Shown here: in pieces, positions 1 to 43,451 of the stretch | Layout of the letters: each line of letters starts with the position of its first letter | Position numbering within the stretch: position 1 is the first letter of the stretch | From: Trichosphaerium sp. ATCC 40318 | Lineage: Eukaryota > Protista > Tubulinea | Assembly: GCA_038496445.1 (NCBI GenBank) | Contig: JALMLS010000507.1 | Location: forward strand, 558,001 to 622,000 | DNA length: 64,000 bases | Reading direction: 5' to 3' | Made by a program: the position numbers and the translations under genes | The notes under the pieces: generated by a model | Told to the model about the DNA's origin: nothing | What the model saw: only the letters and a program-made list of their open reading frames with translations | Database searches by the model: none

Positions 1-1385
1 GCGAGGAGTATTGGAAACACGGCAAACGACACGGAGAGCACAAGATGTGGCATAAGAACGGTGTATTAGAATTACAGTGTAATTTTGTGGACGGTAAGCG
101 AGAAAAAGAGTATAAGAGTTGGTATGAAAACGGTCAATTGCGTGAAGATCGTACGTTTATCGAAGGTAAACAAAATGGACACTATAAGAAGTTCCATGAC
201 AATGGTAACTTGCTTGAGGAATGCAGTTATGTTAATGGTAAGCGAGAAGGGGAGTGCAAGCGCTTGTATAATGATGGTAAGTTACTTGATGAGTGTTTTT
301 TTGTCAACGGTAAGCGAGAGGGAGAGTATAAGAGTTGGTATGCCAATGGACAGCTTCTTGAAGATCGTATGTTTGTTGAAGGTAAACAAATTGGAGAATA
401 TAAACGTTTCTACAATGACGGTCACTTGTTTAAGGAGTGTGATTATGAGGATGGTTACCGAGAAGGAGAGTATAGGATTTGGCACAATAACGGTCAATTG
501 AATGTACTTTGTAAGTACATCAATGGCGAGCTGAATGGACGGTACAAAGTGTGGTCTAGCCGTGGTCAGGTTATTGAGATGAGTGACTATGTTGATGGTA
601 AGAGAGAAAGAGATTATACACGCTGGTATGAAAGCGGCCAAGTACTTGAAGAGTGTGAATTCGTAAACGGTGAACCAAAAGGAGTTTACAAAAAGTGGTT
701 TCAAAATGGTCAATTAAATGAGCAAGTTTATTGCTTAAATGGTAAACAGCATGGAGAATATAACAAGTGGCATGATGATGGTCAGTTAGTAGAACATTGT
801 AATTTAATTGAAGGAAAACTACATGGAGAATACAAACAATTCAATGTCCTGACTGAACAGTTGATTAAGAAATGTAATTATCTTGATGGTAAGCTTGATG
901 GTGAGTATAGGACTTGGTATTTCAATGGAAACCCAAAAACCCAATGTTATTACATCAACGGCAAAGTAAATGGACGGCTTAAAGCATGGGACTGGGTTGG
1001 TAGATTGCAAGATAATGTTATTTGTGTCAATGGTTATAGAGCTGGAAATGCTACTAGTTTCCAATGTAAACGTGTTAATGGTAAACTACATGGAGAGTAT
1101 AAAAGAATGATTAAAGGGCAGTTAGTAGAGAAAGGTCATTTTGTACAAGGTGAACGTCATGGAGAGTGTACATTTTGGCTTTGTGATGGTACATTATCTG
1201 AACAGTACAATTATGCTAAAGGTAGACGAGAAGGTGTTTATAAGAGTTGGTATGATAATGGTCAGTTGTATGAAGAGTATAGTTACATTAATGATAAGAA
1301 GGAAGGAGAATGTAAGCGTTGGCTTAAAAGTGGTAAACTGTATGAGCACTTCAATTACATTAATAATAAAAGAGAAAGTGACTGA
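1..1385 (+). CDS. MORN-variant (MORN_2/YwqK-like) repeat protein, intronless, 5'-truncated by the window edge
   Basis: About 24-aa repeats G-K-R-E-G-E-Y-K-x-W-Y-x-N-G-Q-L throughout; the frame is open from position 3; AATAAA follows the stop. Confidence 0.9.
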   Translation, partial: EEYWKHGKRHGEHKMWHKNGVLELQCNFVDGKREKEYKSWYENGQLREDRTFIEGKQNGHYKKFHDNGNLLEECSYVNGKREGECKRLYNDGKLLDECFFVNGKREGEYKSWYANGQLLEDRMFVEGKQIGEYKRFYNDGHLFKECDYEDGYREGEYRIWHNNGQLNVLCKYINGELNGRYKVWSSRGQVIEMSDYVDGKRERDYTRWYESGQVLEECEFVNGEPKGVYKKWFQNGQLNEQVYCLNGKQHGEYNKWHDDGQLVEHCNLIEGKLHGEYKQFNVLTEQLIKKCNYLDGKLDGEYRTWYFNGNPKTQCYYINGKVNGRLKAWDWVGRLQDNVICVNGYRAGNATSFQCKRVNGKLHGEYKRMIKGQLVEKGHFVQGERHGECTFWLCDGTLSEQYNYAKGRREGVYKSWYDNGQLYEEYSYINDKKEGECKRWLKSGKLYEHFNYINNKRESD

Positions 1386-1506: not shown

Positions 1507-2736
1507 TTATTTACCATGAACCCACATGTATTGTCCTTTAACTTGTCCATTTTTGTACCATGATTTACTCTCGCCATGTAGGTTACCATCAACCCATGTG
1601 GCTTGATATTTTAGTTTTTCATCTTCATACCATCCTTTACCTTCACCATGGCGTTTGCCATGAGCCCACATGAACTGGTCCTTGAGTTGTCCGTTTTCAT
1701 ACCACGATTTACTTTTGCCATGTATTTTACCATTAACCCACATGGATTGAGTGAGTAGTTGTCCATTTTCATACCATGATTTACGTTTGCCATGTCTGTT
1801 ACCATCAACCCACATGGATTGACTTTTTAGCTGTCCATTGTTATGCCATTCTTTAAATTCACCATGCTGTTCACCATTAACCCATGTGGATTGAGTTCGT
1901 AGTTGTCCATTTTCATACCATCTTTTACATTCGTTGTGCTGTTTATCATCAGCCCACATGGCTTGTTTTTGAAGTTGGCCGTTTTCATACCATTCTTTAC
2001 TTTCGCCATGGCGATTACCATGAGCCCACTTGAATTGTCTTTTAATGTGTCCATTATCATACCAATCTTTGTGTTCACCATGCCGTTCACCATTAATCCA
2101 TGTGGATTGATTTTGTAGTTGTCCATTTTCATACCAACTTTTACATTCACCGTGCTGTTTATCATCAGCCCACATGGCTTGTTTTTGAAGTTGGCCATTT
2201 TCATACCATTCTTTACTTTTCCCATCTATTTTACCATCAACAAACATGCATTGTCCTTTAAGTTGGCCGTGATTATACCATATCTTCATTTCACCTTCTA
2301 GTTTACCATCTACTAATATGTACTGCTTCTTAAGTGATCCACTATCATGCCACTCTTTATACAAACCGCTCATTGCATATTGATGAGACTGTACTTTTCC
2401 ACTTTTATACCATCTTATCCATGTACCTTTTCTTTTTAATGTTTCATCAAAATGTGTATTTGTTGCTGCTCTCTTTGACAAAGTGTGGAATTTTGTGAAC
2501 GCTTCTATATTGAAGGAACAAATATACGTTTGAAGTTCACATGGAATATCCAATAACCCCAAAGAGTCCAATTCGCTGCCCGAATTTTTTATACATTTGG
2601 GATGTGACTTAATAAAATGTATAAGCCACAATGTAATAGTACTATGTGCAGGCACAGGGTTTATGTGCAAAAATATTTGTGTTTTTAAGAAGTTACACCC
2701 CAAGTATGCACTACTTCGATTTGAACTGTACAACAA
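1507..2736 (-). CDS. F-box-like + MORN-variant repeat protein (true start uncertain)
   Basis: LLDIPCELQTYICSF F-box-like motif, then 24-aa WYENGQL...W..G..HG repeats. Confidence 0.85.
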   Translation of the reverse strand: MLYSSNRSSAYLGCNFLKTQIFLHINPVPAHSTITLWLIHFIKSHPKCIKNSGSELDSLGLLDIPCELQTYICSFNIEAFTKFHTLSKRAATNTHFDETLKRKGTWIRWYKSGKVQSHQYAMSGLYKEWHDSGSLKKQYILVDGKLEGEMKIWYNHGQLKGQCMFVDGKIDGKSKEWYENGQLQKQAMWADDKQHGECKSWYENGQLQNQSTWINGERHGEHKDWYDNGHIKRQFKWAHGNRHGESKEWYENGQLQKQAMWADDKQHNECKRWYENGQLRTQSTWVNGEQHGEFKEWHNNGQLKSQSMWVDGNRHGKRKSWYENGQLLTQSMWVNGKIHGKSKSWYENGQLKDQFMWAHGKRHGEGKGWYEDEKLKYQATWVDGNLHGESKSWYKNGQVKGQYMWVHGK

Positions 2737-12580: not shown

Positions 12581-13602
12581 ATGAACGCAGAACTTGCTAA
12601 CTACGAGTTAAATATTACTACTAATTTCATCGAGTACAAGGCACGTATCTATGATATAGCACTATGAAAACGGTTTGCGTTTGGATCGTGCGTACGCGAC
12701 CTTAACCGTCAACTGCCTGGTAACGCAGGTTTGCTGGAAGTGATGTGTTGTCACTACGTTTTCACACTTAGCGCGCCCAACGATCCAATCAGCGGCTACA
12801 GCAACTCCTACTGTGGTGTACGCGACCTTAACCGTCAACTGCCTGGTAACGCAGGTTTGCTGGAAGTGATGTGTTGTCACTACGTTTTCACACTTAGCAC
12901 GGATCTCAGTAGGATGCGCAACAACTTGTTTTTACATTTGTTTTCTAGTGTGAAGTTAAAATCGAGCCAAAACAGAGCACTACGCAGGAGTGCTTTAGGC
13001 CTGAGCAAAACTTGCGTGGCGCCCTGTTTCGGCGCATTTACGCGTGCATACCTTTTAATGGTACTTTTTAGGCTTTGGTAGATGCAGAACTACGTCGACA
13101 ACTAGCTTTAAAAGACGCCGAGGTAGAGGAGGCTAGAGAGAAGGCTAGAGAGCAACAAGCAAAAGATGGCGCCAAAATACAAGCGCTTCTGGCTAAAAAC
13201 CGCAAATTAACACAAGCAAGAAAAAACGTAAAGCGCAAGTACGCACAGCTCATCAAACAGTGTGGAAAGTGGGAAGATCGCGCGAGAGAAATGAAACGCC
13301 AAAAAATTGCCATTGAGGAAAATTCGTATACTGCACTGTGCTGCAACCTACACGGTTCGCTTGCAGAACAGGAAAGAAACAAACAGCGAGCGGATTGGGG
13401 CGCTGATGAAGAAAAGAAGCCGCGTGAACTACCAGAAGGACTTGACTACGATTCTGAAGATTCTGGCGAAGACTACCACGATACGAATGATGGTGATTAC
13501 CGGCAACCTGTTGAGGATGTCCACTCAGTACGCAAATAATTCTACGCGATATTCAAACTTTGTTTTTTTTTTTTGAAACTAACCGTCCTATTGTAGGAAT
13601 AA
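12581..13602 (+). CDS. Uncharacterised coiled-coil/acidic-tail protein, paralog A. Exons 12581-12640, 13072-13527, 13597-13602
   Basis: Phase-0 GC-AG intron 12641-13071 joins MNAELANYEL...YK to ALVDAELRRQ; shares WE.RAREMKRQKI, RADWGADE and NDGDY.QP with the gene at 42420; last intron and SE-stop conserved. Confidence 0.75.
12692..12898 (+). repeat. Two identical 81-nt direct repeats (12692-12772, 12818-12898), period 126
   Basis: GTACGCGACC...CACTTAGC occurs twice exactly. Confidence 0.97.
12966..13033 (+). ncRNA. Candidate long intronic hairpin (pre-miRNA-like)
   Basis: GCC-A-AAACAG-A-GCACTACGCAGG pairs with CTTGCGTGGCGC-C-CTGTTT-C-GGC; covaries with 42813-42881. Confidence 0.55.
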
Positions 13603-13950
13603 TCTTAGTGCTTTGTTCTCTATTAGTTTTGATCTGTACAGTGTAATTTAAAATAAAGTTGTAATATTATGTAATTTAGAACAGTTATTGAGTTGTGTTT
13701 CTTTGTTTTACTGGCTCGGATACAATTTAACTAAAAACAACTCTTTTTAACGCGTCAGGCTATCATTTTTTGAAGTGGTGTTAGTGCCCTTTTGGTGGAC
13801 TAGTAGTCGGAGTAGATACCATAAGTATACGATTTGTGACAGTGTAGTTTCTAACATAACAAACGTTCTTTTCTGCAGTTAAAACGCGTTACGTCCATTA
13901 TTTGTAAACTGGGAGATACATAGGGGTTTAGGTAAAATTGCAAAAAGACA

Positions 13951-14024
13951 TGATTCCGTTGGGGATCGAACCCAAGACCTTCTGCGTGTAAAGCAGATGT
14001 GATAACCAACTACACCACGGAATC
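13951..14024 (-). tRNA. tRNA-Val(TAC)
   Basis: GATTCCG acceptor, TCTGC-TTTACAC-GCAGA anticodon arm, GGTTCGATCCC T-loop, T5 terminator downstream. Confidence 0.97.
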
Positions 14025-14100
14025 ATTTACATTCTTTTCAGCAAAATTTTAACCTACCGATTCGGCAAAAGACTACTAATGGACCGCAATCGCGTAACTA

Positions 14101-20817: not shown

Positions 20818-21637
20818 TCACGGGTCTCTTTTCATAACTGTACCCATTTTGTAGATATTGACACTTTGAAGTATACCTGTGATACCCCACTCTCTAAACT
20901 CTCCATTTCTTACTCCTTTTTTAAAATGACATTTGGCTCTTAACTTACCATTTGGATGCCATTGCTTTGCCTCACCTTCTTTTAACCCTTTAACTTTAGT
21001 ACAATAATAAGTTAATTGACCATTATCATGCCAATTCTTTACATCACCTTCTGCGTTATCATCCTTCATAAAACACTCAATATGTAGCTTTCCATTCGGA
21101 TGCCATTGTGTGAATACACCATCTTCCTTTCCATTCTTCATTGTACATTTTACATGTAACTGTCCATTTGCATGCCACTGTGTATAATCACCTTCTTCCA
21201 AGTCATTGATATAAGTACTTATGCAATGAACTTGACCATTCTTGTGCCATTTTCTTAGTTCTCCTTCACGTTTATTATCTTTATAATGCGTCCTACTATG
21301 TAACTCTCCTGTACTGTAGTATCCATATGATATACCATCCATTTTACCATCTTTAAAATGTGTTGATTGACGTAAACGTTCTCCGTTTTTGGACCATTTA
21401 AGCCAAATTCCATTTTTATCAAAAGATGAATTAAAGTGAGTTAAAGTCGCTGCACGTTTACATAAAAGGTGCCAAGAAACGAATATTTCTGGGTCTAAGG
21501 AACAGGTTTTACGTTGTAATTCTGGCAGGAGGTGTAAGAGTGTAGAACATACTGGCGAAAGCGAAAGAGCTGGAATTCAACGTTAGTTTATAGGGTAGTA
21601 TGCGTTACGTACTGCGCTTTTGTTCTTTGGCACTCAT
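20818..21637 (-). CDS. F-box-like + MORN-variant repeat protein (one 5' intron)
   Basis: N-terminal LLHLLPELQRKTCS...KRAATLTHF...GIWLKW is homologous to the gene at 1507-2736; W-H-x-N-G-Q-L repeats. Confidence 0.88.
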
Positions 21638-41237: not shown

Positions 41238-41573
41238 TGTGTTAGTTCGGTAGTTATAATGCTAGTGAAAAAAAAAAGCACCAATTAAAACGGTTCACTG
41301 AACTGATCTAATGAGCTGTTCGCTGATGTAACAACTAAAGTTATATTAATAGACCCAATGCATACCTCTATTTCTTTTACAGCTTTGTTATGCTTGACAG
41401 CTTATATACGACGTACTGTAACAGCTAACTGAACAAAAATAGAAAAAAAAGTGTTCATAGCAATTGCTGGAAGATAAAAAAAAGAGATGATTGCGTCTCG
41501 TGCCCTACACCGTTTCCTTGTTTGGAATCGGCCTAGGCGCTAGCCAAACACACCGGACCACGAAGTATTAATA

Positions 41574-41654
41574 ATAAATTAAAAGTTTATCGCTCTACCA
41601 CTGAGCTACATCCCATAGTTTTAGCTGGGATGGTGGGAATCGAACCCACGCACA
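41574..41654 (-). tRNA. Circularly permuted tRNA-Lys(TTT): 3' half at 41654-41625 precedes 5' half at 41615-41574
   Basis: Minus strand reads TGTGC GTGGG-TTCGATT-CCCAC CATCCCA G [CTAAAACTA] TGGGATG TA GCTC-AGTGGTA-GAGC G ATAAA-CTTTTAA-TTTAT; all four stems pair perfectly. Confidence 0.8.
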
Positions 41655-42419: not shown

Positions 42420-43451
42420 ATGGACCAAATTGCTAATTACGAGCTGAAGGTTACTACTGAAAGTAATTTTGCCGAATTCAAGGCACGTATCTACGATATA
42501 GCATTATTTAAACGGCCTGCGATTTGATCGTGCGTACGTAACCCTCAACGTCAACAGGCTGGTAATGCAGCCTGGTTGGAAGCGATGTGTGTCATTACGT
42601 TTTCGCACTTAGCGCCCCAAACGATCGAATTAATGGTTACATGCGACTTCTACTGGCGTGTACGTAACCCTCAACGTCAACAGGCTGGTAACGCAGCCTG
42701 GTTGGAAGCGATGTGTGTCATTACGTTTTCGCACTTAGCACAAGTCCAGTAGTAGAAAGAGCAGCCACTTGTATTTTATACATTTGTTTTCCTAGTGTGA
42801 AGTTCAATTCGAGCCAAAACAGAGCGCTATGCAAGGAGTGCTTGAGATCTCAGTAAAACTTGCATAGCGCCCTGTTTCGGCGCCATTTGCGCGTGCATTA
42901 ATGGTGTTTTTTTAGGCTTTAGCTATACAAGAAATACGTAACCTGATAGCTGCGCAAGCTGCCAAAGATCGCGAAAGAGACCAACAAGACACAAAAACTG
43001 CTGCCAAAATAAAAGCGCTGGTCGCTGACAACCAGAAACTATCAAAGTCTAATGCCCGTTTGAAGCGTAAACATGAGCAAACCGAAGAAGAATTATCACG
43101 TATACGCATAGAATGTGAGACGTGGGAGGAACGCGCAAGAGAAATGAAAAGACAAAAAATAAGCGCAGAGGACCGCGCAGTTAATGCTGTTCGCCGTAAT
43201 CTACGTGGTTCACCTGAAGAGGAGGCAGAAGATAACCGCCGAGCAGATTGGGGTGCCGACGAAGTACGAAGGGTGCGGGTTCCTAGAGTTGCTAGAGCTG
43301 AGAGGGAGGACTCCTCGGACGATTCTGGTGAAAGCCGGCAAGATATCAATGATGGCGACTACAATCAACCTGACGAAGAAGCCTATTCAGTACGTCACTA
43401 ATACTACTTCTTCATGTTTTTCTATTTCGTGTAACTCTATTGTAGGAGTAA
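42420..43451 (+). CDS. Uncharacterised coiled-coil/acidic-tail protein, paralog B. Exons 42420-42482, 42916-43389, 43446-43451
   Basis: Same exon-intron layout and motifs as 12581-13602; GC-AG intron 42483-42915. Confidence 0.75.
42534..42739 (+). repeat. Two 80-nt direct repeats (42534-42613, 42660-42739; one mismatch), period 126
   Basis: GTACGTAACC...CACTTAGC occurs twice; homologous to 12692-12898. Confidence 0.97.
42813..42881 (+). ncRNA. Candidate long intronic hairpin (pre-miRNA-like)
   Basis: GCGCTATGCAAG/CTTGCATAGCGC is a perfect 12-bp stem, extended by AAACAG/CTGTTT and GCC/GGC. Confidence 0.55.

Follow-up and report, generated by a model that had tools for sequence, protein, structure and literature searches.

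Why should two copies of a sequence of about 80 nt sit side by side in a protist genome, identical to each other yet plainly different from an equivalent pair elsewhere on the same contig? The question is raised by the 64,000-nt stretch of Trichosphaerium sp. ATCC 40318 DNA that was analyzed here (contig JALMLS010000507.1, positions 558,001 to 622,000; hereafter, the window), which holds two such pairs (Table 1). At locus A, the two copies are identical over 80 nt, counted from GT to AG (81 nt with the next C), and start 126 nt apart. At locus B, about 29.8 kb downstream of A, two 79-nt copies with the same start-to-start distance differ by a single base, which lies inside a hairpin loop. The sequences at both loci thus agree with the first-pass annotation, which had described twin units that are identical in A and one loop base apart in B, and its further statement that the A and B units differ at many sites with opposite indels likewise stands (81 to 82% identity, with -1 nt in the unit and +1 nt in the spacer).

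Table 1. Coordinates of the features in the window (position 1 is its first letter), followed by the dimensions of the twin units at the four loci; a slash marks an exon-intron boundary
Feature	Position	Strand	Length (nt)	Description
Gene A exon 1	12581-12640	+		ATG plus 19 codons, ends ..YK; ORF kept in four paralogs with in-frame indels
Gene A outer intron	12641-13071	+	431	GC-AG, phase 0, AAG/GCACG ... TTTAG/GCT
Gene A helix 1, 5' arm	12681-12689	+		Pairs with 12780-12788; -14.8 kcal/mol, 15/1000 shuffles as good
Gene A unit 1	12692-12771	+	80	Intron-like module, GTACG...CACTTAG; donor matches the genome's intron consensus
Gene A spacer	12772-12817	+	46	Contains helix 1 3' arm (12780-12788) and helix 2 5' arm (12806-12813)
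Gene A unit 2	12818-12897	+	80	Identical to unit 1
Gene A helix 2, 3' arm	12907-12914	+		Pairs with 12806-12813; -14.6 kcal/mol, 19/1000 shuffles as good
Gene A outer intron, tail hairpin	12966-13033	+		Long, conserved; C-G to U-A compensatory change in B
Gene A exon 2	13072-13539	+		155 codons plus stop; coiled-coil, acidic tail
Gene B exon 1	42420-42482	+		
Gene B outer intron	42483-42915	+	433	GC-AG
Gene B unit 1	42534-42612	+	79	
Gene B unit 2	42660-42738	+	79	One loop base unlike unit 1
Gene B exon 2	42916-43401	+		161 codons plus stop
Locus A, dimensions				Unit 1 80, unit 2 80, spacer 46, period 126 nt; units identical
Locus B, dimensions				Unit 1 79, unit 2 79, spacer 47, period 126 nt; 1 difference
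Locus C, dimensions				Unit 1 80, unit 2 80, spacer 47, period 127 nt; units identical
Locus D, dimensions				Unit 1 125, unit 2 131, spacer 43, period 168 nt; 81% identity

The distribution of the units was determined by searching the eukaryotic genome assembly (70 Mb, 642 contigs). A DNA search of the genome recovered a third locus (C; contig 46, L002), and a protein search with the downstream exon recovered a fourth and much older one (D; contig 27, L007). BLAST and four motif patterns, run over the whole 70-Mb genome, returned no unit beyond the resulting eight, all of which occupy the same two positions of four paralogs, so that every locus (4/4) has exactly two. A single pattern scan for metagenome relatives, too loose as formulated, yielded only single chance matches, none with the full unit anatomy. 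The spacer between the units is orthologous across loci, with 76 to 87% identity among A, B, and C and recognizable homology in all four; because of this homology, the twin layout must be older than the gene family. The spacers of A (12798-12806) and D (L007, about 1925-1936, minus strand) also have in common the string TACAG(A)CAAC between the bracket helices described below, which in D overlaps a helix arm in part. Identity at 80 of 80 positions, where paralogous units differ at 12 to 15 sites, is far beyond chance, and the existence of four independent loci makes an assembly artefact implausible.

The first-pass annotation had also attached weight to an invariant period of 126 nt, from which it deduced a length constraint and for which it offered three readings, namely 42 codons, phasing in multiples of 21 nt, or an integral number of helical turns. 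The number of units, which it had singled out for checking together with the period, is indeed constant, but the period is not kept at 126: the four loci have periods of 126, 126, 127, and 168 nt. The value is a coincidence of two of the four loci, and a tempting numerological reading is hereby corrected; no constraint on length can be derived from it, and the phasing and helical-turn ideas lose their basis because the period varies. The reading as 42 codons fails on other grounds, as no frame is conserved and C shifts frame. A coding tandem repeat of 42 codons was also rejected in its own right, with D having stops in all frames and B being frame-shifted relative to A for 55 nt. Near-identical copies, and the fact that 126 equals 42 × 3, are what might recommend a mobile introner or MITE-like element, a 42-codon coding repeat, or an assembly artefact as the source of the pairs. 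We give such explanations almost no credence, considering the restriction of the eight copies to two positions of four paralogs, the differing periods and unconserved frame, and the locus-specific sequence in each of the four loci. Furthermore, the inverted repeats that flank the units differ from copy to copy and covary, marking them as RNA helices rather than the ends of an element. Eight copies in 70 Mb likewise speak against the LTR-like or repeat-spacer-repeat copying that had been proposed. Of the suggestion that the units are introner-like, the mobile copying falls for the same reason, and what survives is the resemblance to introns, in that the units carry the splice-site consensus of the genome.

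The four loci are paralogs, each a two-exon gene that encodes a small coiled-coil protein, with an acidic C-terminal tail in A, B, and C. They share a common layout: an exon 1 of 20 to 22 codons that ends in (Y/F)K, an intervening sequence of 426 to 435 nt, and an exon 2 of 88 to 189 codons. The boundaries of the intervening sequence (Table 1) are invariant and provide the sole in-frame join common to the four paralogs, defining a phase-0 GC-AG intron; RNA that is left unspliced, or from which only the units are removed, reaches a stop after 6 to 61 more codons. An alternative GT donor for this outer intron, located 4 nt further in and used with a later AG, was rejected, as D is without a GT there and without an AG at the matching acceptor position. 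The lead, spacer, and tail were similarly dismissed as exons, their lengths (51 to 52, 43 to 47, and 75 to 177 nt, respectively) not being consistent multiples of three and their frames meeting early stops. A profile made from the four exon-2 translations was searched against 1.84 billion representative proteins and recovered a single match, P0001 (111 aa; source, a 1139-nt JGI contig), which is D exon 1 joined exactly to exon 2 at the GC-AG boundary. The sole cluster mate of this protein, P0002, derives from an MMETSP transcriptome, where it forms a complete ORF, and has one residue different. Because a prokaryote-style gene call on genomic DNA could not yield the joined protein, the outer intron of D, nested units included, is removed in RNA. 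Thus, the outer intron combines a GC donor, an AG acceptor, and a restored reading frame with an RNA-derived join in D; the same profile search of 1.84 billion representatives returned member D only and hence no joined-protein record for A, B, or C. The encoded family matched no Pfam family and no homologue in word searches, and its neighbors in the ESM atlas are only generic coiled-coil proteins. The dN/dS ratios among the paralogs (0.23 to 0.52) point to purifying selection on the protein.

To place the units among the ordinary introns of this genome, we sampled reference introns from its intron-rich HSP70 paralogs; automated calling recovered about half of these, and the consensus combines that half with direct reading of the gap sequences. 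The sampled introns are about 45 to 120 nt long, start with GTACG[T/C/A], contain a T-rich run, and end with TTTAG. In the window, GTACGT is among the ten commonest GTNNNN hexamers despite containing a CpG in DNA of 37% GC. The donor consensus of the genome is thus GTACG[T/C/A] and not GTAAGT, with an unusual C at position +4 that presumably implies a matching change in the U1 snRNA. All eight units start with GTACG, contain a pyrimidine run, and end with CACTTAG at a length of 79 to 131 nt (their ends being recorded as TTTTCRCACTTAG or CTCTCTCACTTAG), and they therefore display the donor consensus, normal length, pyrimidine run, and YAG acceptor of a U2-type intron. The D units are only 49 to 54% identical to those of A, B, and C, and the survivors of this divergence are the GTACG start, the block GGAAR(Y)GATGTG, and the CACTTAGC end. 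The units lie 51 to 52 nt after the outer donor and 75 to 177 nt before the outer acceptor, and their removal creates no new canonical site.

The branch site is where the units depart from this standard. The CTNAY branch motif lies 12 to 25 nt before the AG in the sampled introns, whereas in the units the CTNAY-like TTCAC or CTCAC is only 6 to 8 nt from the AG and is missing in B. The GAU in the conserved GGAAR(Y)GAUG block is the sole shared candidate and could be a possible substitute branch site. The GAU block is followed directly by a helix, namely, GUGU/ACAC in A and C, GUGUG/CGCAC in B, and GUGAGA/UCUCAC in D, the 3' strand of which abuts the UUAG. The extra 45 to 50 nt of the D units lies wholly inside this GAU-to-UUAG hairpin, so that the GAU and the acceptor would be juxtaposed in all eight units.

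Beyond their splice-site-like ends, each of the eight units is bracketed by its own helix of 7 to 11 bp, with arms located 2 to 4 nt before the GT and 5 to 9 nt after the AG. The cognate bracket duplexes have predicted energies of -8 to -18 kcal/mol, and shuffled sequences do as well in 0 to 22 of 1000 cases in seven of the modules and in 99 of 1000 in the eighth. Because the two helices of one locus have different sequences, and because those of D share no sequence with those of A, B, and C, these appear to be four independent helices at the same architectural positions. In an alignment of A, B, and C analyzed with RNAalifold, a helix 1 pair is kept in B through a change from G-C to U-G, and one pair of a hairpin internal to the unit occurs as C-G, G-C, and U-G in A, B, and C, respectively. 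Because G-U pairs are many, we place the RNA on the plus strand. The same RNAalifold model predicts that the outer donor pairs with a segment near the outer branch region and that a helix between lead and tail may enclose both modules. In the long introns of yeast, end-bridging stems bring distant splicing signals together. The bracket helices resemble these in joining distant splice signals in a short-intron genome but differ in that they lie outside the units and loop out pieces that themselves carry splice signals. An alternative pairing of 7 to 8 bp, which would enclose both units and compete with helix 1, can be drawn in A (12682-12691 with 12897-12906) and in C; it is weak in B and absent in D and may be no more than a leftover from the ancestral duplication.

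The tail of the outer intron, downstream of both units, is its most conserved segment (94% identity between A and C). It contains a long hairpin in A, with counterparts in B (42805-42889) and C (L002) and only a short hairpin at this place in D. Three A·C mismatches in the tail hairpin would be G·U pairs if read on the minus strand. When the whole intron was folded and compared with shuffled sequences, D gave a strong signal (z = -7.6) and A an unremarkable one (z = -1.3).

In most genes, the introns are under less constraint than any other part. At these loci, however, the intron segments of A, B, and C are 81 to 94% identical, against 60 to 76% for exon 2. Among the same genes, 23 to 50% of the four-fold sites differ, and dS is 0.48 for the pair A-C and 1.6 to 1.9 for the pairs with B, of which the B-C value of 1.9 is near saturation. 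On these estimates, the intron evolves several times (3 to 8) slower than silent sites. Besides changing more slowly than the silent coding sites of its own gene, this intron carries two full intron-like segments, and each of them has a covarying helix of its own as insulation.

An intron better conserved than its exons is also a feature of snoRNA host genes and, together with the presence of helix-closed modules, might suggest that the units encode small RNAs (of a snoRNA-like, miRNA-like, or other hosted ncRNA type) that are released from the host intron, with the bracket helices serving as processing signals. We regard this as unlikely. There was no Rfam match in A or D, either at the gathering score or at E values up to 10; no C/D or H/ACA boxes were seen on either strand when read by eye; the module folding z-scores of A and B are not significant; and the unit ends are those of the splice-site consensus. 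Separately, a likeness of the spacer's TACAGCAAC to a motif of the dictyostelid Class I RNA was considered but not upheld, as that motif is found inside a stem-closed 60-nt RNA of a class reported only in Dictyostelia (PMC7919456), and there was no match in Rfam.

The units themselves are not the slowest part of the intron, diverging by 15 to 19% between loci, yet in A, B, and C they show 0 or 1 difference within a locus. Overall, unit identity within loci A, B, C, and D is 100, 99, 100, and 81%, respectively, compared with 49 to 85% between loci. The immediate 44-nt flanks group differently. At position 1, 34 to 38 of the 44 nt are common to A, B, and C (20 to 22 with D), and at position 2, 19 to 25 of 44 are shared, compared with 9 to 16 for flanks of different positions. 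Because the units cluster by locus and the flanks by position, the concerted evolution is confined to the unit. Without homogenization, units 1 and 2 of A would be expected to differ at least at the A-C level (about 12 sites), and the observed number is 0. The gene conversion or concerted evolution put forward in the first-pass annotation was thus borne out, by the very comparison that it had recommended, i.e., within-locus clustering of the units across all paralogs. In arrays of rDNA or snRNA genes undergoing concerted evolution, copies are more alike within an array than are orthologous copies between arrays. The units follow this rule, although here there are two 80-nt members 46 nt apart, with splice-site-like borders and a copy number of two in all loci.

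The limits of the homogenized block bear on how the copying might occur. In A, B, and C, the block runs from the first G of the GT to one base past the AG, i.e., almost exactly an intron, and both units sit in what would otherwise be hairpin loops. These two features would suit an RNA-level route, in which an excised unit would insert at the sister position by reverse splicing and, after reverse transcription, return to the gene through recombination. The D units nevertheless make this route very improbable. Their first 57 nt are 95% alike and their last 14 nt are identical, but compensatory changes and indels have set their middle hairpins apart, and replacement of whole introns cannot produce units that are alike at the ends and not in the middle. 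In D, the match also extends 2 nt further upstream. In addition, there are no copies elsewhere in the genome. The flanks still share C-R-C following the AG and, beyond it, GAT(C/T)C, a remaining likeness which indicates that the ancestral duplication took them in as well. The mosaic in D would fit short DNA conversion tracts, and the pattern as a whole suggests gene conversion between 80-nt repeats 46 nt apart. Since the middle hairpin of D differs between the two units, identity of the units is not needed for function.

Taken together, we think it probable that the two units of each gene are nested introns, or mimics of introns, that are clamped by helices within a conserved GC-AG first intron and kept alike by short-tract gene conversion. 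Under this explanation, the spliceosome would most likely recognize the units as nested introns to be excised separately, or at the least as mimics of splice sites, and in either mode they would manage the removal of an outer intron with a weak GC donor and 4 to 8 times the normal length. As the spliceosome of this genome handles introns of about 50 to 120 nt, the strong inner donors might otherwise join the distant outer acceptor, and the resulting RNAs would be dead ends. A bracket helix would hold the two ends of its unit together and apart from the other module, presenting the inner donor to its own acceptor 80 nt away. One outcome could be that the units are removed first, by which the outer intron would shrink from about 430 to between 170 and 275 nt; the other could be that the units hold splicing factors as decoys and so pace the productive GC-to-AG join. 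Meanwhile, short-tract DNA gene conversion or unequal exchange between the direct repeats would let one copy keep overwriting the other. The flanks, having diverged into two different and non-interchangeable helices, cannot convert, and the simplest reason for the sharp limits of the process might be that the unit is the only shared homology left. The mature mRNA looks identical whether or not the units are removed first, and we infer the splicing of the inner units, and what it would achieve, from their anatomy.

The second of these outcomes can be taken further, to units that are never spliced and act as splice-site decoys or protein-binding RNA modules, to which U1/U2AF or a dedicated factor would be bound, thereby slowing or gating the removal of the outer intron much as in detained introns or decoy-exon control; the sameness of the units would still be explained by gene conversion. 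Several features are congenial to it. The branch site of the units is poor by the genome's own standard, which leaves the explanation some probability; the outer donor is a weak GC in 4/4 paralogs; and the spacer, in the manner of a decoy exon, has an acceptor on one side and a donor on the other (PMC7373989). Likewise, the GGAAR(Y)GAUGUG block and the hairpins are conserved beyond what splicing demands, and the internal hairpins and the conserved 12-nt motif, exceeding the needs of a plain intron, also count against reading the units as nothing but introns. Against this, every one of the intron features persists in D, at an appropriate length, although most of the remaining unit sequence has changed there, and the additional sequence of D lies in a hairpin that keeps the GAU by the UUAG, as expected of a working branch-to-acceptor distance. 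As even D retains the complete anatomy of an intron, we rank nested splicing, which seems to us reasonably probable, ahead of such decoys, which we consider a minority possibility.

Nested splicing, or intrasplicing, is known, and complex introns have been described in fungi (PMC4829307; PMC5639578; PMC12403724). The present units resemble these in having an inner GT...AG within a larger intron, such that consecutive reactions are possible. They are not stwintrons, which are defined by an inner intron that splits one of the outer intron's own signals (donor, branch site, or acceptor). They further differ from nested introns and stwintrons in being two tandem copies, each clamped by an outside helix, that stay identical within one gene and are conserved in all four old paralogs, and in residing in an outer intron of only about 430 nt rather than of kilobases. 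Introner-like elements (PMC3609843; PMC4457414) are comparable as near-identical intron sequences with predicted secondary structure. However, introners are scattered, in tens to thousands of copies, over new positions in genes unrelated to one another and are alike genome-wide, whereas these eight copies occupy two fixed positions of one gene family and are alike within a locus. Decoy exons, which promote intron retention and have been described for large human introns (PMC7373989), similarly present a short intronic segment between an acceptor and a donor; here, in contrast, every decoy-type site is matched, at a distance of 80 nt, by a cognate partner, and a helix pairs the two.

More tentatively, the whole arrangement might constitute a splicing device, in which the ordered removal, or the occupancy, of two helix-clamped mini-introns, acting as self-contained nested introns or as stalled mimics, determines how fast the weak GC donor joins its acceptor at a distance of 430 nt. 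If so, such a device would have been conserved for longer than it takes silent sites to saturate and would represent a new conserved cis-regulatory intron architecture in a genome that otherwise has short introns only. Were the inner units spliced, the genes would offer a compact natural system in which to study how RNA structure encodes the order of intron removal, how a spliceosome attuned to short introns copes with a long one, and how gene conversion shapes intron sequence, with the eight units of the four paralogs serving as a mutational series already at hand. Were they not, a protist would have conserved decoys of splice sites, of interest in their own right.

Some minor features of the window may be recorded here. 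Gene A is followed after 410 nt by a tRNA-Val(TAC) gene of eukaryote type (13950-14025, minus strand; ARAGORN, and 67.5 bits in Rfam), and a tRNA-like match with a 42-nt insertion lies about 800 nt upstream of gene B (41522-41615, minus strand; 32.5 bits in Rfam, missed by ARAGORN). Long ORFs at 45-1385 (plus strand), 1507-2736 (minus strand), and 20818-21342 (minus strand) contain arrays with a period of 72 nt (24 codons), the consensus of which resembles the MORN/YwqK type. Finally, the palindrome CACGTG occurs 40 times in the window (both strands), compared with about 20 occurrences expected from its sub-words.
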